From Epithemia pelagica (Eukaryota; Protista; Bacillariophyta), in the NCBI GenBank assembly GCA_946965045.2, contig OX337228.1:744001-808000 (forward strand): 64,000 nucleotides of DNA, written 5' to 3'. The notes beneath the pieces are model-generated. The model ran no database searches. It saw only the letters and a program-made list of their open reading frames with translations, and was not told where the DNA came from. Positions 542-16,111 of the stretch are shown piece by piece. A program made the position numbers and the translations under genes. Each line of letters starts with the position of its first letter. The first letter of the stretch is position 1.

Positions 542-3500
542 CTGCCGATAGCCCATGGCAACCTCGTTCTACCGCCTTTGCGGACGCGGAGGAGAAACTG
601 GGTGTAGCTGCCGCTACTGTCGTTCGCAATGGCGATCCGAATTCGATTGCCGCATCCTCCATTCCACGACTCATCAAAGCAGTGCGAACGTACCAGCATG
701 CTTTTGCCAATCCATCACCCGATCTGGACGCCGACGCACAAGGCGACGACCTATACGAACGCTTAATAGCGACGGTCACTGTTCATCCAGAGAAGGAGGA
801 GCCTGATGTAGTCCCGGAGGACAAACGTGAACGTCGGCTGTACATGATCAAGACTGCTAACGAGTCTTCCCCAGCCGATCCTGCTGGAAAGGGAGTACTT
901 GATGCAGCCGTACTGTCACAACGTTGGGGCATTGGTTTACCCAAAGCGAAGAATACGCTTAAAGTGACGACGCAGGCTGGAGTACGAAACGTATTAATCC
1001 CATCTGAGCGTAAGGTCCGTAAGAAGGCACCGTGGCTCAAATTCCCCAATGTGAAAGGCCGTTGGTTCTCGGACGAGATGTTTGCCAAGGAAGTTTCACT
1101 GAACGGGGACACGGGCGCCTCGATCTTTACAGACGGCAAAGGATTCGACCACGTTTATCCCTGGAAGTCGAAAAAGCAACATCCTGAAGGATTGATGTCT
1201 CTGATTCACAATGTAGGGATTCCCCAAACAATGGTATCTGATGGTGCCCGAGAATTGTTCCTAGGGAAGTCCCGTGAAATATGCAACGAGTACCGCATAA
1301 AGATGGAGAAAACGGTTCCTTATAGTCCATGGCAGAACGCCGCCGAAGCGAGCATTCGTGAACTAAAGAAGGGAGTTGTCAAGATTATGAGGACGACCGG
1401 CGCACCACGACGTTTATGGAGCTATGCTCTTAAATGGTGCTCACACGTACGGCAACTCACGGCATCCGATATCCCTGAATTAGATGGACGTACACCGTTC
1501 GAGCATGTAATTGGCTCAACGCCAGACATCTCTCCATTAGCCATGTTCCAATTCTATCAGCCGGTGTATTATCGCATGCCCATGGCACAGTTTCCCTTCG
1601 AAAAAAGACTGATTGGCCGATGGTTGGGTTTAGCCGATGATTGCACCGATGATATGGCCTATGAAATCCTAACGCAAGAGGGCAATCATGTCACACGAAA
1701 AGATGTGTGGGCCATTCCGGAAGACGACCTGAAGAATCCGACGATTCATCAGCAGTTGTTGGACTATGATGCCGCTATTCAAACGCAAATGAAAGAGCCG
1801 CCATCTGATGGCACAACTGGGAGCGATCCACCCCCAGACCTCTTTGACGAAGGTGAACTTCTAGAGCCCTTGTTCCCAGAGGCCGAAGCCCTGGAATCCG
1901 ACGCGTACACGCCGGAGGAACTAGACGAATACCTCACCGCTGAAGTCATGCTGCCGCGAGGAGGTGAAAGCGCTCGAGCGAAAATCATTAGACGCACGAA
2001 AGATGCTCATGGGCGACCTATTGGTGAGCGCGACGCAAACCCAATCCTTGATACCCGGTACTACGATGTACAGTTTCCGGATGGATCGGTCGAGTCGTAT
2101 GCAACCAATATGATCGCAGAGAATCTGTATTCGCAAGTTGATCCGGAGGGCAATGCGTTCAACACATTGAAAGCCATTGTGGGTCACCGCAGTGATGAGA
2201 CCGCAGTTAAGCGAACAGACGCATCGTTCCTTGACGGCACATCACGCCACACAACGAAAGGCTGGGAATTACAATGTGAACTGTCCGATCAATCGACTGT
2301 TTGGCTGCCGCTCAAAGACGTCAAGAATGGAAATATGATTGAAGCCGCCGAATACGCAGTATCCACTGGCATCGCAAAAGAGCCTGCTTTCGCATGGTGG
2401 GTGCCACGTGCACTTCGTAAACGAGACCGTATTATCAAAAAGGTAAAGTCACGTTATTGGAAGCGAACGCACAAGTATGGCATTGAGTTGCCCCACTCTG
2501 TGGAAGAAGCCCTGGCGATTGACCGCCGAACGGGGACTGACTTCTGGCGTAAGGCTATTGAGAAAGAAATGAAGAACGTTGGCATTGCTTTCGAATTTCC
2601 AGCTGATGGCGAAGTGCCTTCTGGATACAAGCATATCCCCTGCCATATGGTTTTTGACATCAAATCAGACCTGCGACGAAAAGCACGGTTAGTGGCCGGA
2701 GGCCACAAAACTGATCCACCCAAAGAATCGACCTATTCTAGTGTGGTATCACGCGATAGGGTACGCATTGCTTTTACTATCGCTGCACTAAATGGTCTAG
2801 ATGTTCTCGTCGGGGACGTGCAAAACGCATATCTCAACGCACCGACTAAAGAGAAGACCTATACCACCGCGGGACTCGAATTTGGACCAGATAAGGTTGG
2901 ACAACCTGCACTGATAGTGCGCGCATTATATGGTCTCAAAAGTTCTGCCGCAAGGTGGCGTGATCACATCGCTGCAACGCTCCGCGATATGGGATTTAAG
3001 ATGTGTCAAGCTGATCCGGATGTATGGCTTCGAGCGAACACTCGACCATCTGATGGGTTCCAGTATTACGAGTATGTTTTGGTCTACATTGATGATCTGC
3101 TGATTGTTAGTCATGATCCCAAAACCGTGATGCAGGACCTGCAGAGGCGCTATACGATCAAGCCCGACAGTATCAAACCGCCAGACGAATACTTAGGATC
3201 CGAAATACGGCGTTATACCATACCCGACACGCAAGATCCGTCGAACCGTGATCGTTGGGCCATGTCCGCTGACAAGTATTGTAAGCGTGCTCTTGCCGAA
3301 GTCGAAACGGAACTGGAGAAATCCGGAGAAAAGCTGAAGTCAAAAGTGACGACGCCGATCGCCGATGGATATCGCCCGGAATTGGATGCGACTCCTGAAC
3401 TCGACGCAAGACGTGCGAACTATTACCAAGGACTGATCGGTATCCTCCGTTGGATTGTTGAACTCGGTCGTATCGACATTACAACCGCAGTCTCCCATAT

Positions 3501-4179
3501 GTCCCGTTTTATGGCGAATCCACGAGAAGGACATCTCGAGCAAACGTTGCACATTTTCGCGTATCTAAAGAAGTACGATAAATCCGCCATTGTGTTCGAC
3601 GACACAACCCCTGACTTCGACGAGTCACGTTTTACCCGACCGGATTGGTCTGAGTATTATCCTGATGCTGCCGAGCCGATTCCGCCAAACGCACCAGCAC
3701 CGCGTGGAAACGCTGTCACCACGACTTGCTTTGTCGATGCTGATCATGCTGGATGTCGTGTCACACGGCGCTCTCAAACAGGAGTCCTACTGTTCATGCA
3801 ACGAGCACCGATCATGTGGTATTCAAAACGACAAAACACTGTTGAGACGTCTACATTTGGCAGTGAGTTCGTGGCGATGAAGACTGCCATTGAAATGATT
3901 GAAGCATTTCGTTATAAGTTGCGAATGATGGGTATCCCGTTGGATGGAGAGACGAATGTGTTTTGCGACAATGAATCTGTGTTTAAGAACTCGACTCAGC
4001 CAGAATCAGTCCTAAAGAAGAAGCACAATGCAATTGCTTATCATCGGACTCGTGAAGCGCAAGCTGCTGGACTTGTGCGCATTGCATGGGAAGAAGGTGA
4101 AACGAATCTTGCCGATATCCTAACCAAACTGCTACCCGGACCTCGATTGCGATTCCTGGCCCAACGTATCATGTGGTAG
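535..4179 (+). CDS. pol: Pol: integrase, reverse transcriptase and RNase H; uninterrupted but lacking protease
   Basis: Integrase D,D,E (FSDEMF / VSDGARE / QNAAEASIRE); RT VYIDDLL and ALYGLKSS; RNase H FVDADHAG, GSEFVAM, DNESV, NLADILTK. Confidence 0.95.
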   Translation: MLTADSPWQPRSTAFADAEEKLGVAAATVVRNGDPNSIAASSIPRLIKAVRTYQHAFANPSPDLDADAQGDDLYERLIATVTVHPEKEEPDVVPEDKRERRLYMIKTANESSPADPAGKGVLDAAVLSQRWGIGLPKAKNTLKVTTQAGVRNVLIPSERKVRKKAPWLKFPNVKGRWFSDEMFAKEVSLNGDTGASIFTDGKGFDHVYPWKSKKQHPEGLMSLIHNVGIPQTMVSDGARELFLGKSREICNEYRIKMEKTVPYSPWQNAAEASIRELKKGVVKIMRTTGAPRRLWSYALKWCSHVRQLTASDIPELDGRTPFEHVIGSTPDISPLAMFQFYQPVYYRMPMAQFPFEKRLIGRWLGLADDCTDDMAYEILTQEGNHVTRKDVWAIPEDDLKNPTIHQQLLDYDAAIQTQMKEPPSDGTTGSDPPPDLFDEGELLEPLFPEAEALESDAYTPEELDEYLTAEVMLPRGGESARAKIIRRTKDAHGRPIGERDANPILDTRYYDVQFPDGSVESYATNMIAENLYSQVDPEGNAFNTLKAIVGHRSDETAVKRTDASFLDGTSRHTTKGWELQCELSDQSTVWLPLKDVKNGNMIEAAEYAVSTGIAKEPAFAWWVPRALRKRDRIIKKVKSRYWKRTHKYGIELPHSVEEALAIDRRTGTDFWRKAIEKEMKNVGIAFEFPADGEVPSGYKHIPCHMVFDIKSDLRRKARLVAGGHKTDPPKESTYSSVVSRDRVRIAFTIAALNGLDVLVGDVQNAYLNAPTKEKTYTTAGLEFGPDKVGQPALIVRALYGLKSSAARWRDHIAATLRDMGFKMCQADPDVWLRANTRPSDGFQYYEYVLVYIDDLLIVSHDPKTVMQDLQRRYTIKPDSIKPPDEYLGSEIRRYTIPDTQDPSNRDRWAMSADKYCKRALAEVETELEKSGEKLKSKVTTPIADGYRPELDATPELDARRANYYQGLIGILRWIVELGRIDITTAVSHMSRFMANPREGHLEQTLHIFAYLKKYDKSAIVFDDTTPDFDESRFTRPDWSEYYPDAAEPIPPNAPAPRGNAVTTTCFVDADHAGCRVTRRSQTGVLLFMQRAPIMWYSKRQNTVETSTFGSEFVAMKTAIEMIEAFRYKLRMMGIPLDGETNVFCDNESVFKNSTQPESVLKKKHNAIAYHRTREAQAAGLVRIAWEEGETNLADILTKLLPGPRLRFLAQRIMW

Positions 4180-4301
4180 CACCCCTTTTAGATCCAAAAT
4201 GGGATCGCCCCCTTTTGAAGAATAGTCCGACGTACTGGACCGGCCTCTGCTGACATGACGAACTAAACGAAGTTGCCCACCCCGATTTTGTTCGCGGGGA
4301 C

Positions 4302-4541
4302 TGAATAAATAATCACGGGCGCCCCCTTTGTAACCTACGAAAGGCCTCGCCATGCCTCGCTACGCACCGCCTGGCATCGCCCGGCCCCTAGCTATGTGTT
4401 CGCTAGTGGGTACCGTGGTCGCTATTTGGCCCCTACGTGAGCGATTTGCCCCCAAAGGGCACCCCTAGTTTAGTCATCATAATTTCTGATAGTTTGATTG
4501 TTGCAAGCCGTATATTGCGTCTGGCCGTCAGTTTTTATTCA
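4302..4541 (+). repeat. Putative 3' LTR of element 1
   Basis: Starts TGAATAAA directly after the PPT-like tract (4291-4301); TTTATTCA at 4534-4541 is its exact 8-bp reverse complement. An alternative end is CTTATTTCA at 4669. No 5' LTR is in the window to confirm. Confidence 0.5.
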
Positions 4542-5205
4542 AATCATCATGTCGGATGGTCGTTTATGAGTAGTATTCTTGTTGCGGAACTCGGAACCGA
4601 GTTCTCACTCCCACACAAGCCCGACGGATCCACGAGTCACGGTTCCCGCGGTGCTACATTCTTATTTCATGAGAACATAGTCACCCTGCCAATAATGAGA
4701 AATAAGAATTTAGAATCTATCCCGGTACATCTTGAATCTAATCTTACCCAACCGAAAAGCGAAAAGTTGAGCTGAATCATTGCTGATTCCCGCACGAGGG
4801 TGGGAATTCGTGAATGAAGTAACGTTACGGTTTCTAATCGTAATCTGTGTTTGTTGCCGTTTGCATCGATGTTTCTCATAATTTGCCGCAACGAGAAACA
4901 AGTTTTGTTGTCCTTGTTAGAGCAGGCCGGAGAAAGATCATCATCTTCAGCCTCCTCGACTTGTTGTATTGAGCAAGTGAAAACTGTTTTGTTTCTTGCG
5001 AGGATGCTCCACCAATGTTCGTGTTCGATCAACAGCAACAACATCAAAAATAATGAGGCTGTTGTGACCCGAGAGTGCACGGACGACAAGTCATTCCTAC
5101 CACTCATGCCTGTCCACTTGCCGTGATCACCACGACAACGGCGACAAGACATGAGCAGATTTTGACAAGTTTTTACATTCCCACGATTTGAAAGACACTT
5201 GCAGG

Positions 5206-5504
5206 TGTTGAGTAGAGTGTCGTAGCCGTCAGCTTTGCCCACTATACTGTAAAGTCGAAAATGATCCTAATTTACTGGCTTGATTGTTTCCAAAGAATGA
5301 GCTCTAGACTCATTTGTTGGCGATTTGTTCGCCTTTCCTCTTCTGACTACGTCAGCGAATGTCACGCGTGCGGGGCTCGTCCTGCTCGCTTTATTCTCCA
5401 TAATATTCTTCATTGTCTTTGGTCTTGCTTGCATTGTCTTTGGTCTTACTTCGTCAGGCGTTCCCGCGTCGCAGTGTTTTCTTTCTTGCTCATTATTTCC
5501 AACA
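5206..5504 (-). repeat. 3' LTR of element 2 (299 bp)
   Basis: Identical to 11200-11498 except one substitution (ttggCGattt vs ttggCAattt); contains an imperfect 21-bp tandem duplication (CATTGTCTTTGGTCTT core). Confidence 0.98.
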
Positions 5505-8500
5505 CGCTCCTCACAAGACGTGGGGACGTCGTGTGTTTGTAGAGTGCTGATGGGTTTGTGTCCCAACAGTACGTCCCGGAATTTGTTGAAAAGTGCTCCT
5601 TGTAGTGGTTTTGTGTAGAAATCCGCTAGCATCTCCTCGGTAGGGCAGTAGTGGATGTCGATCTTCTCTTGTTGAACTTGATCCTTAATGAAGAAGTATC
5701 GGATGTCCACATGCCTTGATTGTTTTCCTGCCGATGCCCTTCCATTTTTCTCGAGTCGTATGGCGCTTTGGTTGTCTTGTGCAAAGCGTGTGCTCTTAAT
5801 ATTGTATCCTTGGGCCTCGAGAAACCGTTTAGCCCATAGGGTATTCGGGATGTAATCACTGGCCCCAACAACCTCCGCTTCCGTAGAGCTTTTCGTGTTA
5901 AGCTTTTGCTTCCTTGATTTTGCCATGATGGCACCTCGTCCAAGTGACATCGCGCCTCCTGTGTGGCTTTTCATGTCTTCGTGCACGGCAAATGATGCGT
6001 CCACCCAGTTGAGAAGATGTGGGACGTCGTCCGCTCCCACGATGTATTCCATCTCTTCAGTAGCGTGTAAGTACTGAAGCACTCGTCTGAGTTTGTCCCA
6101 ATCCTCAGTGGTGGCCTTTGAAACGCGTGTATAGAGGAAGGCGATTGCCGTTTGAATGTCAATTCTTGATCTTTGTGACAAATAGAGCAGTTTGGCGACG
6201 ATGCTGTGGAATTTCTCCTTCCGTTTCGGATCCAATTCGGGCGCACTTTTGATGTTGAAAAGGCCCTTCTTTGCAGGTGAGGATGCCCCTTGGGACACGT
6301 CTTCACCGCACATTTCGATTGCTTCCTTTATATATTGCGGCATCAGGATACTGACTGCGCCGTTTTCGTTGATTGTGATGTTCATTCCCAAATACGTGTG
6401 TTTGTTCCCTCTGCATACTGTCATCTTCCCGAACTTGGCCTCGATCGTGTCGATAATTTGTTCGACGACTTCTTCTTCCACGTGGGATGCCTTGAGATCG
6501 TCCACATACCATGTGATGGTGCGCTGTTTGCCGTTAATGATCTTGTTCGCGACACACGGATCATAGGGGTTTAGCTCAAAACCCATTTCTTTTAGAGTCG
6601 ACGCGAACAATTCATACCAAAGCAATGCGGATTGTACACATCCGTATAGCGCCTTGTTGAGGCGTACATATAGTACTTTCACGCCATCTTCCATGACGAC
6701 GTACTTCTCGTATTTCTTGTCCAGTTTGCAAAAAATGTCAACGACCTCCTGTCAGTCGCATTAGAACGAAGTCTTTCATGTAGGCGTTGAGATAGGCACC
6801 GGCAATGTCAGCCGTGATAACCTTTCGTCGTTCTTGAGCGTCGATGACGAGGGACATGATGAGGGCATCCACCGAAAGCGCTGGTGATGCGGTTTCACTT
6901 TTGTCGTACAGGGTCCGTTGTGGTCGACCGTCTGCACATGAACGTCCCTTCAACTTCCCACAACGTTTCTCCTTGATTACGTTGACTGATCGTAGGGCAG
7001 CCTTTTTTTGTTGGGGGGTTAATTTGGATGCATCCTGTGGGTCGAAGGTATCTTGGTTGTCCAACTGAGTGAGCTCTTTCAAGAGTGCATCGATAGCACG
7101 TTGTCCATGTTTCTTGATGCCTGCCTTCGCGGACATCTGAGTAAAGATGAAGTTTGCCATCAAAGAGTGGATGGGTGTCCGATCATTCACGTTGGTTGTG
7201 GCGTGTTTGATGGCCTGTTGCAGGAGTTGCACGTGTAAATAGGAGGTTGCACCATCCGTCATGTCCATCTGATGATCGAGCCGGTGGGCGTACGATCGCT
7301 CCCGGTTTCCTCGAAGGCTGTATTCGTGCCTAGTCTCGGCGTTGTCGGTTGGTTCGTCCATGTCATGGTCATCCTCGTATTCTTCAGATACGTCTGGGAA
7401 CTCGTCGCGCTCCTCATTTTGCGCTCCTTCGTCCTCCACGTTTTCTATTTCGTGATTGTCGGTGTTGTCTCCGATATCGGTCACCTCTTTGTCCTCATCG
7501 ACATCATCGATGGGGTCATCCTCTGTGTTGTTTCGCTGTTGTCGTCGGAAGTGGATACCACATGCCGTTCGCTGTCGGAGCTGTCGGGCGCTCCTTCATC
7601 GATGTCGTGTTCGTCTGTGTCGTCACTTTCTTCGCCCGCTCCTTCGTCGTTGGCGTTGTGGTGGGCATCGTTGTTCGCTCCTTCTTCTGCTCCGTCTTCT
7701 TCCTCCAAATCGTCCTCGTTTGCGATGTCGTCATCGTGGTCTTCTATGGGTACGTTCGGTGCCCATTCGAAAACGAGCTCACCGTTGATGATGGGCTGTT
7801 CCTGTTGTTCAGCCAACTCCTCAACCCGGTTAATCACATCCTGTGTGATGGGCAGTTCCGTCCACTGTTGTCTGGAGATTCTTGCCCCGGTCGTGAGTGA
7901 TAGGAAGTAATAACTCCCTTGAGCATTTCCTGTTGGGTTGAGTGCTATGGCCCCAATGGTACGTGGCGCTGTGGTGCTAGTCTGTCGTCGCTCCTCGAAC
8001 ACTTGGGCGTACTGGCCAAACTCGATCCTCATACTGTTGTAGTCTGGATCGGGAAGGCCAGTTATGATTTTTCGGGGGCTCATGGTTGGCAAGATTCCCT
8101 TTCGGTTCGGCAATTGGTTCAACGTGCGGACGGACAGGGTAACTAGCTCTCGCACCATGAGGACAGGGTATCGTCGAAAAGGGAGTCCGTGGACGGTCGC
8201 CCGCACCCGCTCCTTAATTGTCCGGATGGAGCGTTCCACCTGTCCGACGTGGTCATCTGCTGCCACGATGTTGGCGATGACTGGTCGGATGTTCGCTTGG
8301 AGGGGGGCGAACTCATTATCGGCATGCATATCGACCACTTCGAAACCTCTGGATGAGTAGAGGTGGAAAACGTCCTTCAGTTCTCGTTCCAGGGTGGCCT
8401 TGCGTCGGTTCTCGATTGCCGCAACAGTTCGGAAGTTGATGTTTCGTGATATCGTGTGGCAAAAGATGTGGCCTTGAACGTAAAAATTGTCTGCGCATAT

Positions 8501-11498: not shown

Positions 11499-12794
11499 GC
11501 AGGTACACCAAAGTGCTTTCTTGTCTCTCGAATCCTCTCGTTCTTCATGACGGATCCGGAGATTTGCAAGATGTACGACCTGTTACAAACAAACATGTGA
11601 CGTTTTCGTTTTGCTGACATTCCCACGAGTTTCAATGTGTGAGCGGTTCACACTCATGTATGACGATTCCCACGATATCACGCTTGTTCTTGTCTCGAGC
11701 AAGTAGCGTCGTTCTTTGACCCAGCCCCCTCTGTCTCTTTTTACAAGACACCACCATGGACAACAATTCCACGACTTTGAAAACAACAGCGATACAGTCT
11801 TGTGGACAGACTACTGGTATCTTACATCTTTAATGTTGTTGGTTCAGACAACACTGATATCTCGAGACTCTCGAGACTCTCGAAACTCTCGAAACTCGAA
11901 ACCCGAAACCCTGTTTCGCTTCTAATGGAGAACAACAGCTTTTCGACCCCCAAGAAACTGTTTCTCTCTTCCATGGACACTGCCCACGATACTTTACTTT
12001 GCCATCTCTTCTTCTTCTACTACTTTCTTCTGGACAATGAATTGGTCCCTCCCACAATGGACACAAATTCCCACGAAACAACAGGCACAGTTGTACCACA
12101 CTCGCATTGCATTTTTCACGGTCGTTGCCGTGACAACAAATGTTGTATGAGTATGGACTTCTATTCTCTCCATCGTGTGTGTTGCTGGTTGTTCGATATC
12201 CTCCCCCTATCCCACCACACGATCCGACAGTTGAATGGTTCGTTTCACGTCTCAACGACAATTCACTGTTTCCTCCTTCCTGAGTTTCCCCATCACACTG
12301 TCCTGGCAATACACATAGTTTTTGTTCTAAAAACACTACTACTACCTAGTAACCCCGCAACTTCTTGGTTTCGTTGTCTCTTGCTAGACTACTTTGGTGT
12401 CACTGGCATGTTTGTCCCCCCAAAAATCGGATTGACCAGCGACACTTTCCTTCCAGAACGATTGTTTGGACAATCTCGTTCGAATTGCGCAGCCCTGTCC
12501 AGCATAGCACAACAACAACCCGTCTTGGGCAGAGACCAAAAAACAACCACGACTGTTTGAAGGTCGTTCTATTTGCTGCGTTTTCGGGACATGGACCTTG
12601 ATGGAAACGGAACGGCCATGGATCTCCTTAGGGAGGAACAAAACCGATGGATGACTACTATTGTAGGAATAGTCTATCTCCTCCGATTGTGCTCGTAGAG
12701 AGCCTAGCATATTCCAATAAATCATACGATTCTTCGAAGTACTCGGTGGTGAGAATGACTGGGGCGCGTCCCAGTTCTCATTTGGACTGCAACC

Positions 12795-12901
12795 TACCCC
12801 CAAGCATGGGGTGAGTCCAATCACGCGTGATTGAATGCACTTCGTGCATTCGTCTACTCACCCCCACGGCTCGACCTGGTCTCTCTCGACTCAGATACAA
12901 A
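12795..12901 (+). repeat. Left TIR of the Pack-type element
   Basis: Shares blocks TACCCCCAAGCATGGGG, GTGCATTC, TCACCCCCACGGCTCGA and TCTCGACTC.GATACAAA with the reverse complement of 15223-15332; internally palindromic. Confidence 0.85.
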
Positions 12902-12966
12902 ATTCATGCAACACACCCTCATTCATCACGGTGGTGGAGGTGCAGTGGTCCAGAACATCTTCTTTA

Positions 12967-13933
12967 ATGTCGTCTTCCTCCCACAAACGGCACCGCCTCA
13001 CTCAGAAGGAAGTAAGGGAGCTATTTGACGCCCGCAGTGTTTCCGAAAGGTCGACGGCGTCTGTTAACAACCAAGATGAAAGCATCGCCAAAAACCAAAC
13101 CACCACCCCATCCACCAGCAACAACAATCCTTCGTCTCTGCCTCGTTTCGCTTCCTTTCCCACGGTCGATCCGCAAGCCTATTAGAACCCCTATGGCGCA
13201 GAAGGATCCATTGGCCCATCCAAGTCACACTGTCCACCAATACCACCTCCAACGTGTTGATTTCTTCGGTCCACGTGTACCCGCTTCCTCAATTCTTTGT
13301 CAATCTGTCGGTATTGGACGATGATTTGGACGTGAAGGAACTCGAACGAAAACTACAATTGGCAACGAGTTCCTACCTAGAGCTGTCCTTTCAAGAAATT
13401 GACTCCCTTTTTCGCAAGGAAAATGAGGAACGATTTGATCCGGTGCAAATCACATTTGATCGTTTTGATCGAGCCTTTCAAGGAACCGAAAGCAATACTG
13501 ATCCAAATTTCCATAACATTCCAACCTCTTTGATTTGGCCTCCATTCAAGGGTATTTAAGGTTTGTTACGGACGTGACCAATCACCAGCATGAGGTTTCA
13601 CAAAAGGAAGTTCAACGCATTGAAACCATTATTCAAACGACTCTTCGTTTTGCCTTTGAAGATCCCATCGACCGTCTGTTGCCTTGGTACCATGATCACG
13701 ATCCAGTGCTTCTTCGAGTAGTGGAGCAAGTCCAAGTCACTGTGGAGGATGTACCCATATTACTTGAGAAAAAGGGTACTGCTACAAACGACAGCGAGTC
13801 TTCGTGTCTCAAGGAACAAGAAGACTACCTGTTTTACGTTGCCATTGGCGTTGCCTTTTTCCTCACGGCAACTGGAATATGTGTCATTTTTGGAGCTTGT
13901 CAAGTACGGACCGTCATGAGGGGCATCCAATAA
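12967..13933 (+). pseudogene. Captured, interrupted gene fragment(s); the C-terminal part looks like a single-pass membrane protein
   Basis: ATG at 12967 (MSSSSHKRHRL...), followed by stop- and frame-broken ORFs 13254-13559 and 13535-13933 ending in a hydrophobic helix (YLFYVAIGVAFFLTATGICVIF). Confidence 0.5.
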
Positions 13934-14854
13934 ATGGCCGTTTGGGCCGTGTATTCGGGCAAGTGATACAAGGTGTGCAAGAGTGCTTTCAATGACTCAA
14001 TCAGGGGTGTATGCAAAATGGCATGGACCATTGCCGACAGGAGGGCCTGGACTTGGGTCACGGGCCACTTGGCTTCTCCATCGCTGTCATCAGTTTCATC
14101 TTGTGGAATGCGGGTATGCGCCGTACTGGTCGTCGGAGCAGATGATTCTGCACCGTAGCAAATGACGTCGGCCGTTCGAATGACTCGTGAACCTTCCCAT
14201 AGATCTGTGAGCTCCCGACGTCGCCAACCAATCAAGAGGACCATTCCCAAACAGCAGGGGACCAAGTACAAAAGTGCCGGTTGGCCCATATCCATCCAGT
14301 ACACAGCAGCATTTGCCATGGACAGTCCAACAGCATAGGCAAATGACACGAGGCAAAAAGTAGCCACCGTTCCAGCAAGTACTTCCGCAATATTTTTGTT
14401 CGGGACAGGGATAGGACCGTCCCAACGATCCATTGCCACCACCCATGACACCCAAAAAGCTCTTGGCTGAATCAAAGCGTGCAGCAAAACTGATCAGTAA
14501 TCCGGGCACGACAATGTCGCCGATACCCAAAAGGTTGGACCCGCCACGATAGTCGGCAATGTGCGGTATGGTGAACAGCATTGGTAGGGGATTCCCCCGT
14601 TGTCGGCAATAGAGGGGATCTTTGTGGTACTTTTCACACCAGTCTGGATCGGGAGGAGGACCTCCACTGGTACCAACAACCAGCATTACGCTGTTCTTGA
14701 ATATAAGAGGACTGACAAAGACAAAGAATATATCGTAGAAAAAAGCACTGTGACGAGGCAAACAATAGGACAAAAGACATGGTCCGAGAGGACTTGGCAG
14801 AGTAGGACGTCTCTCTGCGACAAGCAATACGTACTGCAGGCATCGACTTGCCAT
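13900..14854 (-). pseudogene. Captured C-terminal half of a signal peptide peptidase-like (A22B) intramembrane protease, frameshifted
   Basis: FFYDIFFVF (YD), LGIGDIVVPG (GxGD) and GQPALLYLVP (PAL) motifs split over two frames (shift near 14350); the N-terminal half is absent. Confidence 0.88.
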
Positions 14855-15222
14855 GCCCGGGCCGTCTTTCTATGCCATCCTCTGAATACTGAGTTGATTG
14901 ACGTTCGAGTAGAGGAAGCCCACAGGCCTTATTGGTAGTTGAAAGAGGAGTGGCCGGAGGGTTTCGGTTGTGGCAAAAAAAGGATGCTTGACGTTTTACG
15001 ACAGGGTCATCTGGTTTGTTGTTTTTACTTTGTTGAAGGCTTGAATTGAGAGTGTCTTGGTCCAATGAGTAGAGGCTTTGGAGAGCCGGCGCCTTCGTAG
15101 AGTCATCGTGGGTAGTATTGGTGAGAGCCTTGTGGTCGGGGTTGGAGGTGCGGGTAGCCATGATGGATGTAATCGTCCTCACTAGTTTGCCTCCGTGGTG
15201 GCTCTGTGGAGGTGAAATGCAG

Positions 15223-15332
15223 TTTGTATCAGAGTCGAGAAATTGGCGATTTGGGGCCCTCGAGCCGTGGGGGTGACTAAGGGAATGCACTTAAAAAGTG
15301 CGACTGACCGGGTCGCCCCATGCTTGGGGGTA
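15223..15332 (-). repeat. Right TIR of the Pack-type element
   Basis: Inverted counterpart of 12795-12901. Confidence 0.85.
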
Positions 15333-16111
15333 GACTGCAACCATGGACATTGGAAGCTTCAATTTCTGGTTGGGTTCATCAAAAAGGGACATTTGAGAGT
15401 ATAGCCCTATCCGACCGTTGGGCGCATTCACCGGCCCAGGGCATATGCCTCTTTGCCGTTAGAACTATCCAGCGCCTGATATCAACAGATCATAAGACTT
15501 TGTGACTACTTTTCCCCCGGAAACCGATAGAGAGTTTGAACAGGACGTCCTGTCAGTCGTGCGACGTCCCGCGGGTTTCTGACACCGTCTCCGCATCCCC
15601 CCATCGGGGGTCGCCAAAAAACGAAAAACACGTGCGCTGCCAGCCTGCCTGCCGTGACGTACGTGCGCGTTGAAAGGGATCCTGAAGTCACTCTTGTAGA
15701 GTGCGAGCGAGCAGACTCGTTTGAGAGCCGTTGGCGACTGGTCGTGATCTTGGTGATCCTGGAACAGCTTTTCCAGACTATGGTCCACGAAGTACTACGT
15801 TTACGACCGGGATGACTCTGGAACAGTGTATGAACCGCACTCTACCATAATAAAGAGGTGCGTCGGCCGACTTTGGGGCTGCGTGTTGTGATTTGTGATT
15901 TGGCCATTTTTGGGGAACCTCGTCATCTTCTCCTCTCCGTTTGTTGTGTTACGATCTCTCTCAACTCTCAACTCTCTAAGCCGATGAGAAGAGACGATTG
16001 CATTCCGTATTCGTTTCTATCGTGGTAGTAGAAGACAAAACGAGACACACTACAAGACAGTTTGCTCGTACGAGTTATCAAGGAATCCCTCAATCTGCAA
16101 ACGACAACAAC

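Follow-up and report, generated by a model that had tools for sequence, protein, structure and literature searches.

In plants, Pack-MULE and Pack-CACTA elements (Jiang et al. 2004, per PMC6446971; PMC6379663; PMC8903248) share the organisation of a terminal-inverted-repeat (TIR) element without a transposase, and Pack-TYPE transposable elements are defined as plant elements (PMC8903248). Here we analyse an element of this kind in the diatom Epithemia pelagica, at positions 12795–15332 of a 64-kb window (the whole stretch of DNA under analysis, C1:744001-808000, contig OX337228.1) of a 60.5-Mb assembly with 23 contigs, which are written C1, C2 and so on below. More than ten full-length silicon-transporter genes in the assembly (Pfam Silic_transp, E down to 1e-226) identify the host as a diatom. 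Like the plant Pack elements, the window element holds several unrelated host fragments in mixed orientations, with chimeric open reading frames (ORFs) and retained introns; it too appears to be mobilised in trans, and its family to have made several independent captures. Unlike them, it resides in a diatom, its putative driver is a family with a DUF6589 protein and a RecQ helicase instead of Mutator or CACTA, and it still contains defunct 5′ remnants of the two genes of its own family.

Three other described systems lie close to it. Elements of the AcademH lineage of the Academ superfamily (Kojima 2020, Mob DNA 11:15, as quoted in PMC10045372 and PMC10799480) are cut-and-paste TIR elements with a large transposase, a superfamily 2 (SF2) helicase (DEAD/Helicase_C, RecQ-like) and target site duplications (TSDs) of 9 or 10 bp, as in the present family, and AcademX has TSDs of 3–4 bp (PMC10045372); by the title as cited, AcademH is reported from animals and fungi, whereas the host here is a diatom. 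The Mutator-like element (MULE) of Phaeodactylum tricornutum is likewise an active diatom DNA transposon with long TIRs (∼200 bp) and a TSD of 9 bp (bioRxiv 10.1101/2023.01.02.522487), but it has a canonical MULE + SWIM transposase and an E3-ligase-like second gene, with neither helicase nor DUF6589, and according to its authors it is not a Pack-MULE (same preprint). KolobokH and Kolobok-1_CCri also combine a DDE transposase with a RecQ helicase, once on the complementary strand (PMC9587614), but with a 4-bp TTAA TSD and RR/YY termini, against 9–10 bp and TA termini here. Searches of the accessible literature returned no description of Pack-type or gene-capturing DNA transposons in diatoms, or of Pack-type Academ derivatives. 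The phenomenon itself is known; what is new is the host lineage, the driving superfamily and Pack-type family members shown to have moved.

The element, its cargo and its mobility

Within the window, the 17-bp sequence TACCCCCAAGCATGGGG has two exact matches, at 12795–12811 (+) and 15316–15332 (−), against a chance expectation of 0.10, and the 10-bp sequence GACTGCAACC occurs exactly twice, each time adjoining one of these termini on its outer side (12785–12794 and 15333–15342). Inverted alignment of both ends extended over ∼110–120 bp, with conserved blocks separated by indels and a mean column identity of 79%; the left TIR (12795–12910, +) consists of the perfect 17-bp terminus followed by these blocks, and the right TIR occupies 15215–15332 (−). 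The element is 2,538 bp long, both its 17-bp terminus and its 10-bp TSD are perfect, and the initial annotation was correct in describing 17-bp termini, block-conserved TIRs of ∼110 bp and two flanking copies of GACTGCAACC.

Both terminal regions are common to the autonomous element described below. The left region (12795–13226, +) comprises the TIR, a 5′ leader and ∼87 codons from the beginning of a transposase gene, and shares 92.8% identity with an autonomous copy (L034 1001–1441) and 98% with L037, a non-autonomous sister element. Its transposase relic starts at ATG 12967 and is interrupted by a premature stop at 13183–13185 (codon 73); the residues that it encodes (MSSSSHKRHRLTQKEVREL...) match the N-terminus of the transposase with an E of 9e-9. 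The right region (14837–15332, −) contains the 5′ end of a RecQ-like helicase gene in addition to the right TIR, and is 86.9% identical to autonomous L055 1501–1996. Its minus-strand ORF from ATG 15161 (MATRTSNPDHK...), which had initially been annotated as the N-terminal piece of a host gene, is where the helicase gene of the family itself begins; near-identity to the N-terminus of the 642-aa helicase ORF rules out a captured host N-terminus. No intact transposase is present in the interior, which retains only the ∼87-codon transposase relic and the helicase 5′ relic, in keeping with the initial statement that the element has no transposase.

Between these regions lie three pieces of host genes. 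Fragment A (13227–13922, +) corresponds to codons 52–281 of a membrane protein gene of 431 aa at C4:1468274-1468964 (92.7% identity, with 44 mismatches and one frameshifting indel), and this donor gene is intact and encodes a signal peptide and a transmembrane helix. It is followed by a 4-nt filler GCAT (13923–13926) and by the 145-bp fragment B (13927–14071, −), which is 87% identical to C5:1109251-1109398, codons 492–540 of an intact 656-aa ORF. Fragment C (14071–14834, −) is joined to B with a 1-nt overlap and was matched at 95.7% identity to a signal-peptide-peptidase gene at C1:5356288-5357052, whose two exons cover Peptidase_A22B positions 3–139 and 139–282; the fragment comprises an entire 87-nt intron and most of the last exon, matches profile positions 139–218 and 227–283 on the minus strand in two frames, and encodes the GxGD + PAL half of the peptidase in frameshifted form. 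A 2-nt filler TG (14835–14836) separates it from the right terminal region. A chimeric ORF of 195 aa (13900–14487, −) fuses the C-terminal part of the peptidase in frame with fragment B and ends in antisense fragment A. The membrane-protein piece and the catalytic half of the peptidase had both been recognised in the initial annotation, which expected probably three host fragments; three are indeed present, but one had been misidentified, the real third being fragment B. Intact parental genes, which it had proposed to look for, were found at three unlinked loci on C4, C5 and C1, where the match is confined to the cargo and lies in each case inside a long intact ORF, and no family terminus was found within 1.5 kb of any of these three loci. 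The start of fragment C falls precisely on the first base of the donor intron (GTACGT), which may be accidental or a hint at where copying began.

A second copy of the element was found at C3:2185795-2188332, with the same length of 2,538 bp, 24 mismatches and no indels (99% identity); its flanks are unrelated to those in the window and it has its own perfect 10-bp TSD, GCCCGATAAT. A third copy on C17 is truncated. In the primary assembly (G000) the sequences on either side of the window insertion occur only once and there is no empty site; the empty allele was found in a second public assembly alone (ENA ERZ21939226), which represents both haplotypes. There the window locus is present as an occupied allele on ctg1325l (L078), 100% identical to the window, and as an empty allele on ctg1332l (L077), in which the flanks are joined through a single GACTGCAACC (5212–5221). 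The C3 locus is occupied on ctg1247l and empty on ctg1344l (L081), with a single GCCCGATAAT. Both full-length insertions are hemizygous and precise, and the single-TSD alleles that were to be looked for thus exist for both full copies. The second copy together with the precise empty sites shows that the unit transposed recently with its cargo. The element accordingly has the features of Pack-TYPE elements: it is non-autonomous, it contains fragments of host genes with intact parents elsewhere, and it moves as a unit with this cargo. The target of the C3 copy (L081 4984–5005; L032 4539–4560) adjoins ATACCCCCTAAGGGCTGGGG, a sequence similar to the family terminus, which could be a decayed older end or reflect a preference for end-like targets.

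The transposon family and its two genes

We searched the genome for the family terminus with two mismatches allowed and obtained 138 matches, compared with 7 for the reversed terminus used as a control. TSDs were present at 15 of the 17 end pairs examined, mostly of 10 bp and otherwise of 9 bp and with no common sequence, and the family termini are 5′-TA...TA-3′. Further paired ends with TSDs, whose existence was a proposed check on the element, are thus frequent. The two remaining pairs are L038/L039, with swapped flanks, and L046, with no TSD, and are compatible with recombination between copies or with mistaken pairing. L038 (C4:2025227-2033035) and L039 (C4:3401457-3409265) are inverted 7.8-kb autonomous copies, and each of the 9-bp flanks AGTGACCGG and CGCTCCATT occurs once beside either copy, in reverse complement; recombination between the copies with a ∼1.37-Mb inversion would leave such a signature. 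Solo ends and recombinant pairs also exist in the genome (L008, L017, L018, L038/L039), as do MITE-like (miniature inverted-repeat) elements of 112–118 bp that consist of the two termini only, with a perfect 10-bp TSD (L031, C1:584511-584628; L045, C2:1058663-1058774).

Transposase-coding members, which had likewise been proposed as a check, were also found, and autonomous elements span 7.8–16 kb. The 7.8-kb pairs L038, L039 and L040 each carry two genes, a 1,732-aa DUF6589 ORF and, on the opposite strand, a 698-aa DEAD/Helicase_C protein. The autonomous copy of the window element's subfamily, with the exact terminus, is located at C6:3281976-3298047; it codes for the 642-aa helicase and for a transposase of 1,615 aa, which shares 52% identity with the L038 transposase. 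To judge from sequence identity, the ends of the window element derive from this autonomous element. Moreover, the two-gene layout is repeated in paralogues of 51–63% identity, and four diverged subfamilies each have a helicase of 642–729 aa (DEAD/Helicase_C) encoded on the opposite strand. Hence, because the layout is kept in diverged paralogues, the helicase is a core gene of the family and not cargo. Its best relatives of solved structure are RECQ1, BLM, RecQ, WRN and RECQ5, and its match to the NCBIfam model recQ_fam has an E of ∼1e-19, which is below that model's own cut-off.

The only Pfam match of the transposase is DUF6589, which was matched in the autonomous partners and in 29 of 50 homologues; hAT, P and KDZ models gave no match to the transposase or these 50 homologues. 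A profile search of 1.84 billion representatives returned 717 relatives, one of them from a dictyochophyte transcriptome. In relative P0136, from another sample (1,677 aa; L079 6001–11034, ENA ERZ25039508 contig_75023), DUF6589 and DEAD/Helicase_C are present in one frame, and no TIRs were found around this locus. In the PDB, the transposase had no match by sequence or by profile. An AlphaFold model from a shallow alignment of 11 close sequences (predicted local distance difference test, pLDDT, 45) was discarded; a model of an 861-residue segment from a 78-sequence alignment reached a pLDDT of 90 and a predicted template modelling score (pTM) of 0.87. Foldseek with the entire 861-residue model found nothing significant. 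When model residues 205–742 were compared with 48,161 solved chains, the Hermes hAT transposase was the top match (Z 9.3, 289 residues aligned, root-mean-square deviation, rmsd, 7.7), together with Tn5 (Z 7.8), retroviral integrase cores (Z 6–8, rmsd ∼3), the P element (Z 6.9), ISCth4 of the IS256 family (Z 6.6) and RAG1 (Z 5.5).

These matches suggest that the transposase adopts an RNase-H-like DDE fold that accommodates a large helical insertion. The conserved acidic positions fit the predicted fold (residue numbers are those of the modelled segment): D213 lies in strand 1, D456 follows strand 4 and GDLH (503–506) follows strand 5, and almost no variation is seen at D456, G503 and H506 in the 78-sequence alignment. 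In the model, a helical domain of ∼200 residues is inserted ahead of a helix with E704, D708 and E712, and the third catalytic residue would be among these three. The modelling thus supports a function of DUF6589 as a DDE transposase.

Superfamily affiliation

A DUF6589 transposase, a RecQ-like helicase beside it and TSDs of 9–10 bp, in combination, place the family with AcademH and not with Mutator, and membership in AcademH is probable. The initial annotation had assigned the element to Mutator, and this affiliation was not upheld. A true Pack-MULE, that is, a non-autonomous Mutator-superfamily element served in trans by a MURA-type transposase, would account for the 9–10-bp TSDs at 15 of 17 pairs and for the ∼110-bp TIRs, both of which are typical of MULEs; canonical MULEs with 9-bp TSDs do exist in diatoms (bioRxiv 10.1101/2023.01.02.522487), and ISCth4 of the IS256 family is among the fold matches. 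However, the ends of the element are those of autonomous copies in which DUF6589 is the sole transposase candidate, and the models MULE, Transposase_mut, DBD_Tnp_Mut and SWIM gave no match to the transposase or its 50 homologues even at E up to 10. In addition, a RecQ-like helicase, absent from MULEs, is present in every one of these autonomous copies, and Hermes outscores ISCth4 in the fold comparison. We therefore regard a Mutator affiliation as very unlikely.

A KolobokH-type element was considered because in Kolobok lineages, too, a RecQ helicase is found beside the DDE transposase. The gene set and its arrangement on the strands are alike in the red-algal Kolobok-1_CCri, with its helicase on the complementary strand, and in KolobokH (PMC9587614), and the homologue P0136 is a DUF6589–helicase fusion, as is found in KolobokH. 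Against this, the Kolobok TSD is the 4-bp TTAA and the Kolobok termini are 5′-RR...YY-3′ (PMC9587614), whereas the present family has 9–10 bp and TA...TA, and the C/DxxH signature is non-canonical here (GDLH); this affiliation is very unlikely.

Recurrent capture, its route and its meaning

Cargo matches in two further non-autonomous members indicate that the family has captured host fragments repeatedly. One of them is 2,158 bp long and has copies on C11, C10, C7 and C17, of which the C10 copy contains a 1.3-kb insertion and the C7 copy a nested Copia. Its cargo includes 1.13 kb that is 94.5% identical to C3:2161796-2162923; at this locus, where no family termini were found, an ABC-type ATPase gene and a leucine-rich-repeat (LRR) gene converge, and the match covers both of their 3′ ends as well as the intergenic spacer. 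A 6.1-kb element of another subfamily on C2 has 1.6 kb of cargo that is 99% identical to C4:1417136-1418930, including part of a calcineurin-like phosphoesterase (Metallophos), and also contains a nested Harbinger. Among the copies of the 2,158-bp element, one (L035 1066–7419) is interrupted by a Copia-type retrotransposon (RVT_2) and another (L036) by an insert of ∼1.3 kb (3075–4379). The C2 element has two left ends 12 kb apart (2168981 and 2180961, +) and one right end (2187068, −), with interiors 100% identical; this points to a tandem duplication of the local sequence, element included. Two other candidates were rejected as Pack-type elements: L033 is a plain deletion derivative, and the 7.2-kb L048 (C1:4610545-4617719) is a short family member with a nested high-copy repeat. 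This repeat (855–6220 of the interior) is ∼5.4 kb long, has more than 20 copies of 97–99% identity, and encodes ORFs of 602 aa and 388 aa without a clear Pfam family (the RING match is weak).

The cargo was captured at the DNA level. Because fragment C retains the whole 87-nt GT...AG intron of its donor (14748–14834, −), genomic DNA and not cDNA was copied. A route through spliced RNA into the same element could be read from the cargo of three sister elements, which lacks stretches of 105–693 bp present at the matching loci (the comparisons were L047 with C4:1417136-1418930, L041 with C7:1417267-1418408, and L044 with C17:847280-848494 and C5:1567613-1569020), and from the position at which fragment C starts, the exact first base of the intron. 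The complete intron speaks against it, as do the 171-bp gap in the cargo of the C2 element, where a 3-nt overlap (TGC) is not placeable as a GT-AG or GC-AG intron, and the 1.13-kb cargo of the 2,158-bp element, which spans the intergenic region between convergent genes; we give this route very little probability. That there is no mobile unit, and that two solo transposon ends merely surround native syntenic genes or a local rearrangement, is hardly credible and is excluded by the second copy and the empty sites, for although solo ends and recombinant pairs occur in this genome, the 2,538-bp unit recurs at an unrelated C3 locus with its own TSD, both loci have precise one-TSD empty alleles, and the cargo consists of internal pieces of genes that are intact elsewhere.

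We conclude that the window element is very probably a Pack-type non-autonomous member of a DUF6589/RecQ-like helicase family that is best classed as AcademH-type. The Pack-type reading of the initial annotation is retained in that the element is non-autonomous and recently mobile, carries unrelated host fragments and belongs to a family with recurrent capture, while its Mutator component is given up. Several points weigh against the conclusion. The family is assigned to AcademH by gene content and TSD length as quoted in PMC10045372; the capture mechanism is drawn from four junctions only; the Z-scores of the fold matches are ‘middling’ on the tool's own scale, although the list consists uniformly of transposases and integrases; and fragments A, B and C all contain frameshifts or stops, and the chimeric ORFs are predicted ones.

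The element has kept only the parts that a transposase would require in cis, namely the TIRs and ∼430–500 bp of subterminal sequence on each side, in which the defunct 5′ ends of the transposase and helicase genes lie. In place of the former interior it contains genomic DNA copied from three host genes that are unlinked and themselves intact. In the mechanism that we propose, excision and insertion would be performed in trans by autonomous elements, with target cuts staggered by 9–10 bp. A deletion derivative of an autonomous copy may have gained host DNA stepwise, and the identities of 87, 93 and 96% to the donors would make B the oldest fragment and C the youngest. Because the four cargo junctions show overlaps of 0–1 nt and fillers of 2–4 nt, capture most likely occurred during repair of a double-strand gap in an internally deleted element, by template switching or end joining, as has been proposed for plant Pack elements (PMC6379663); that the helicase of the element contributed to capture would be speculation. 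It is a tentative further possibility that AcademH-type transposons form a gene-shuffling system of diatoms, in which derivatives repeatedly copy pieces of unlinked genes, fuse reading frames and spread while still segregating, by a Pack-type mechanism independent of that of plants and with the RecQ-like helicase possibly favouring template switching in gap repair.

The element extends transposon-mediated exon shuffling, in taxonomic as well as mechanistic terms, to a diatom and to a little-studied superfamily that carries a helicase. In the annotation of diatom genomes, such elements give rise to gene models that are false or chimeric, for example half signal-peptide peptidases. Moreover, the hemizygous insertions indicate that the family has been active recently and perhaps is so currently, which makes it a candidate mutagen or tool in diatoms.

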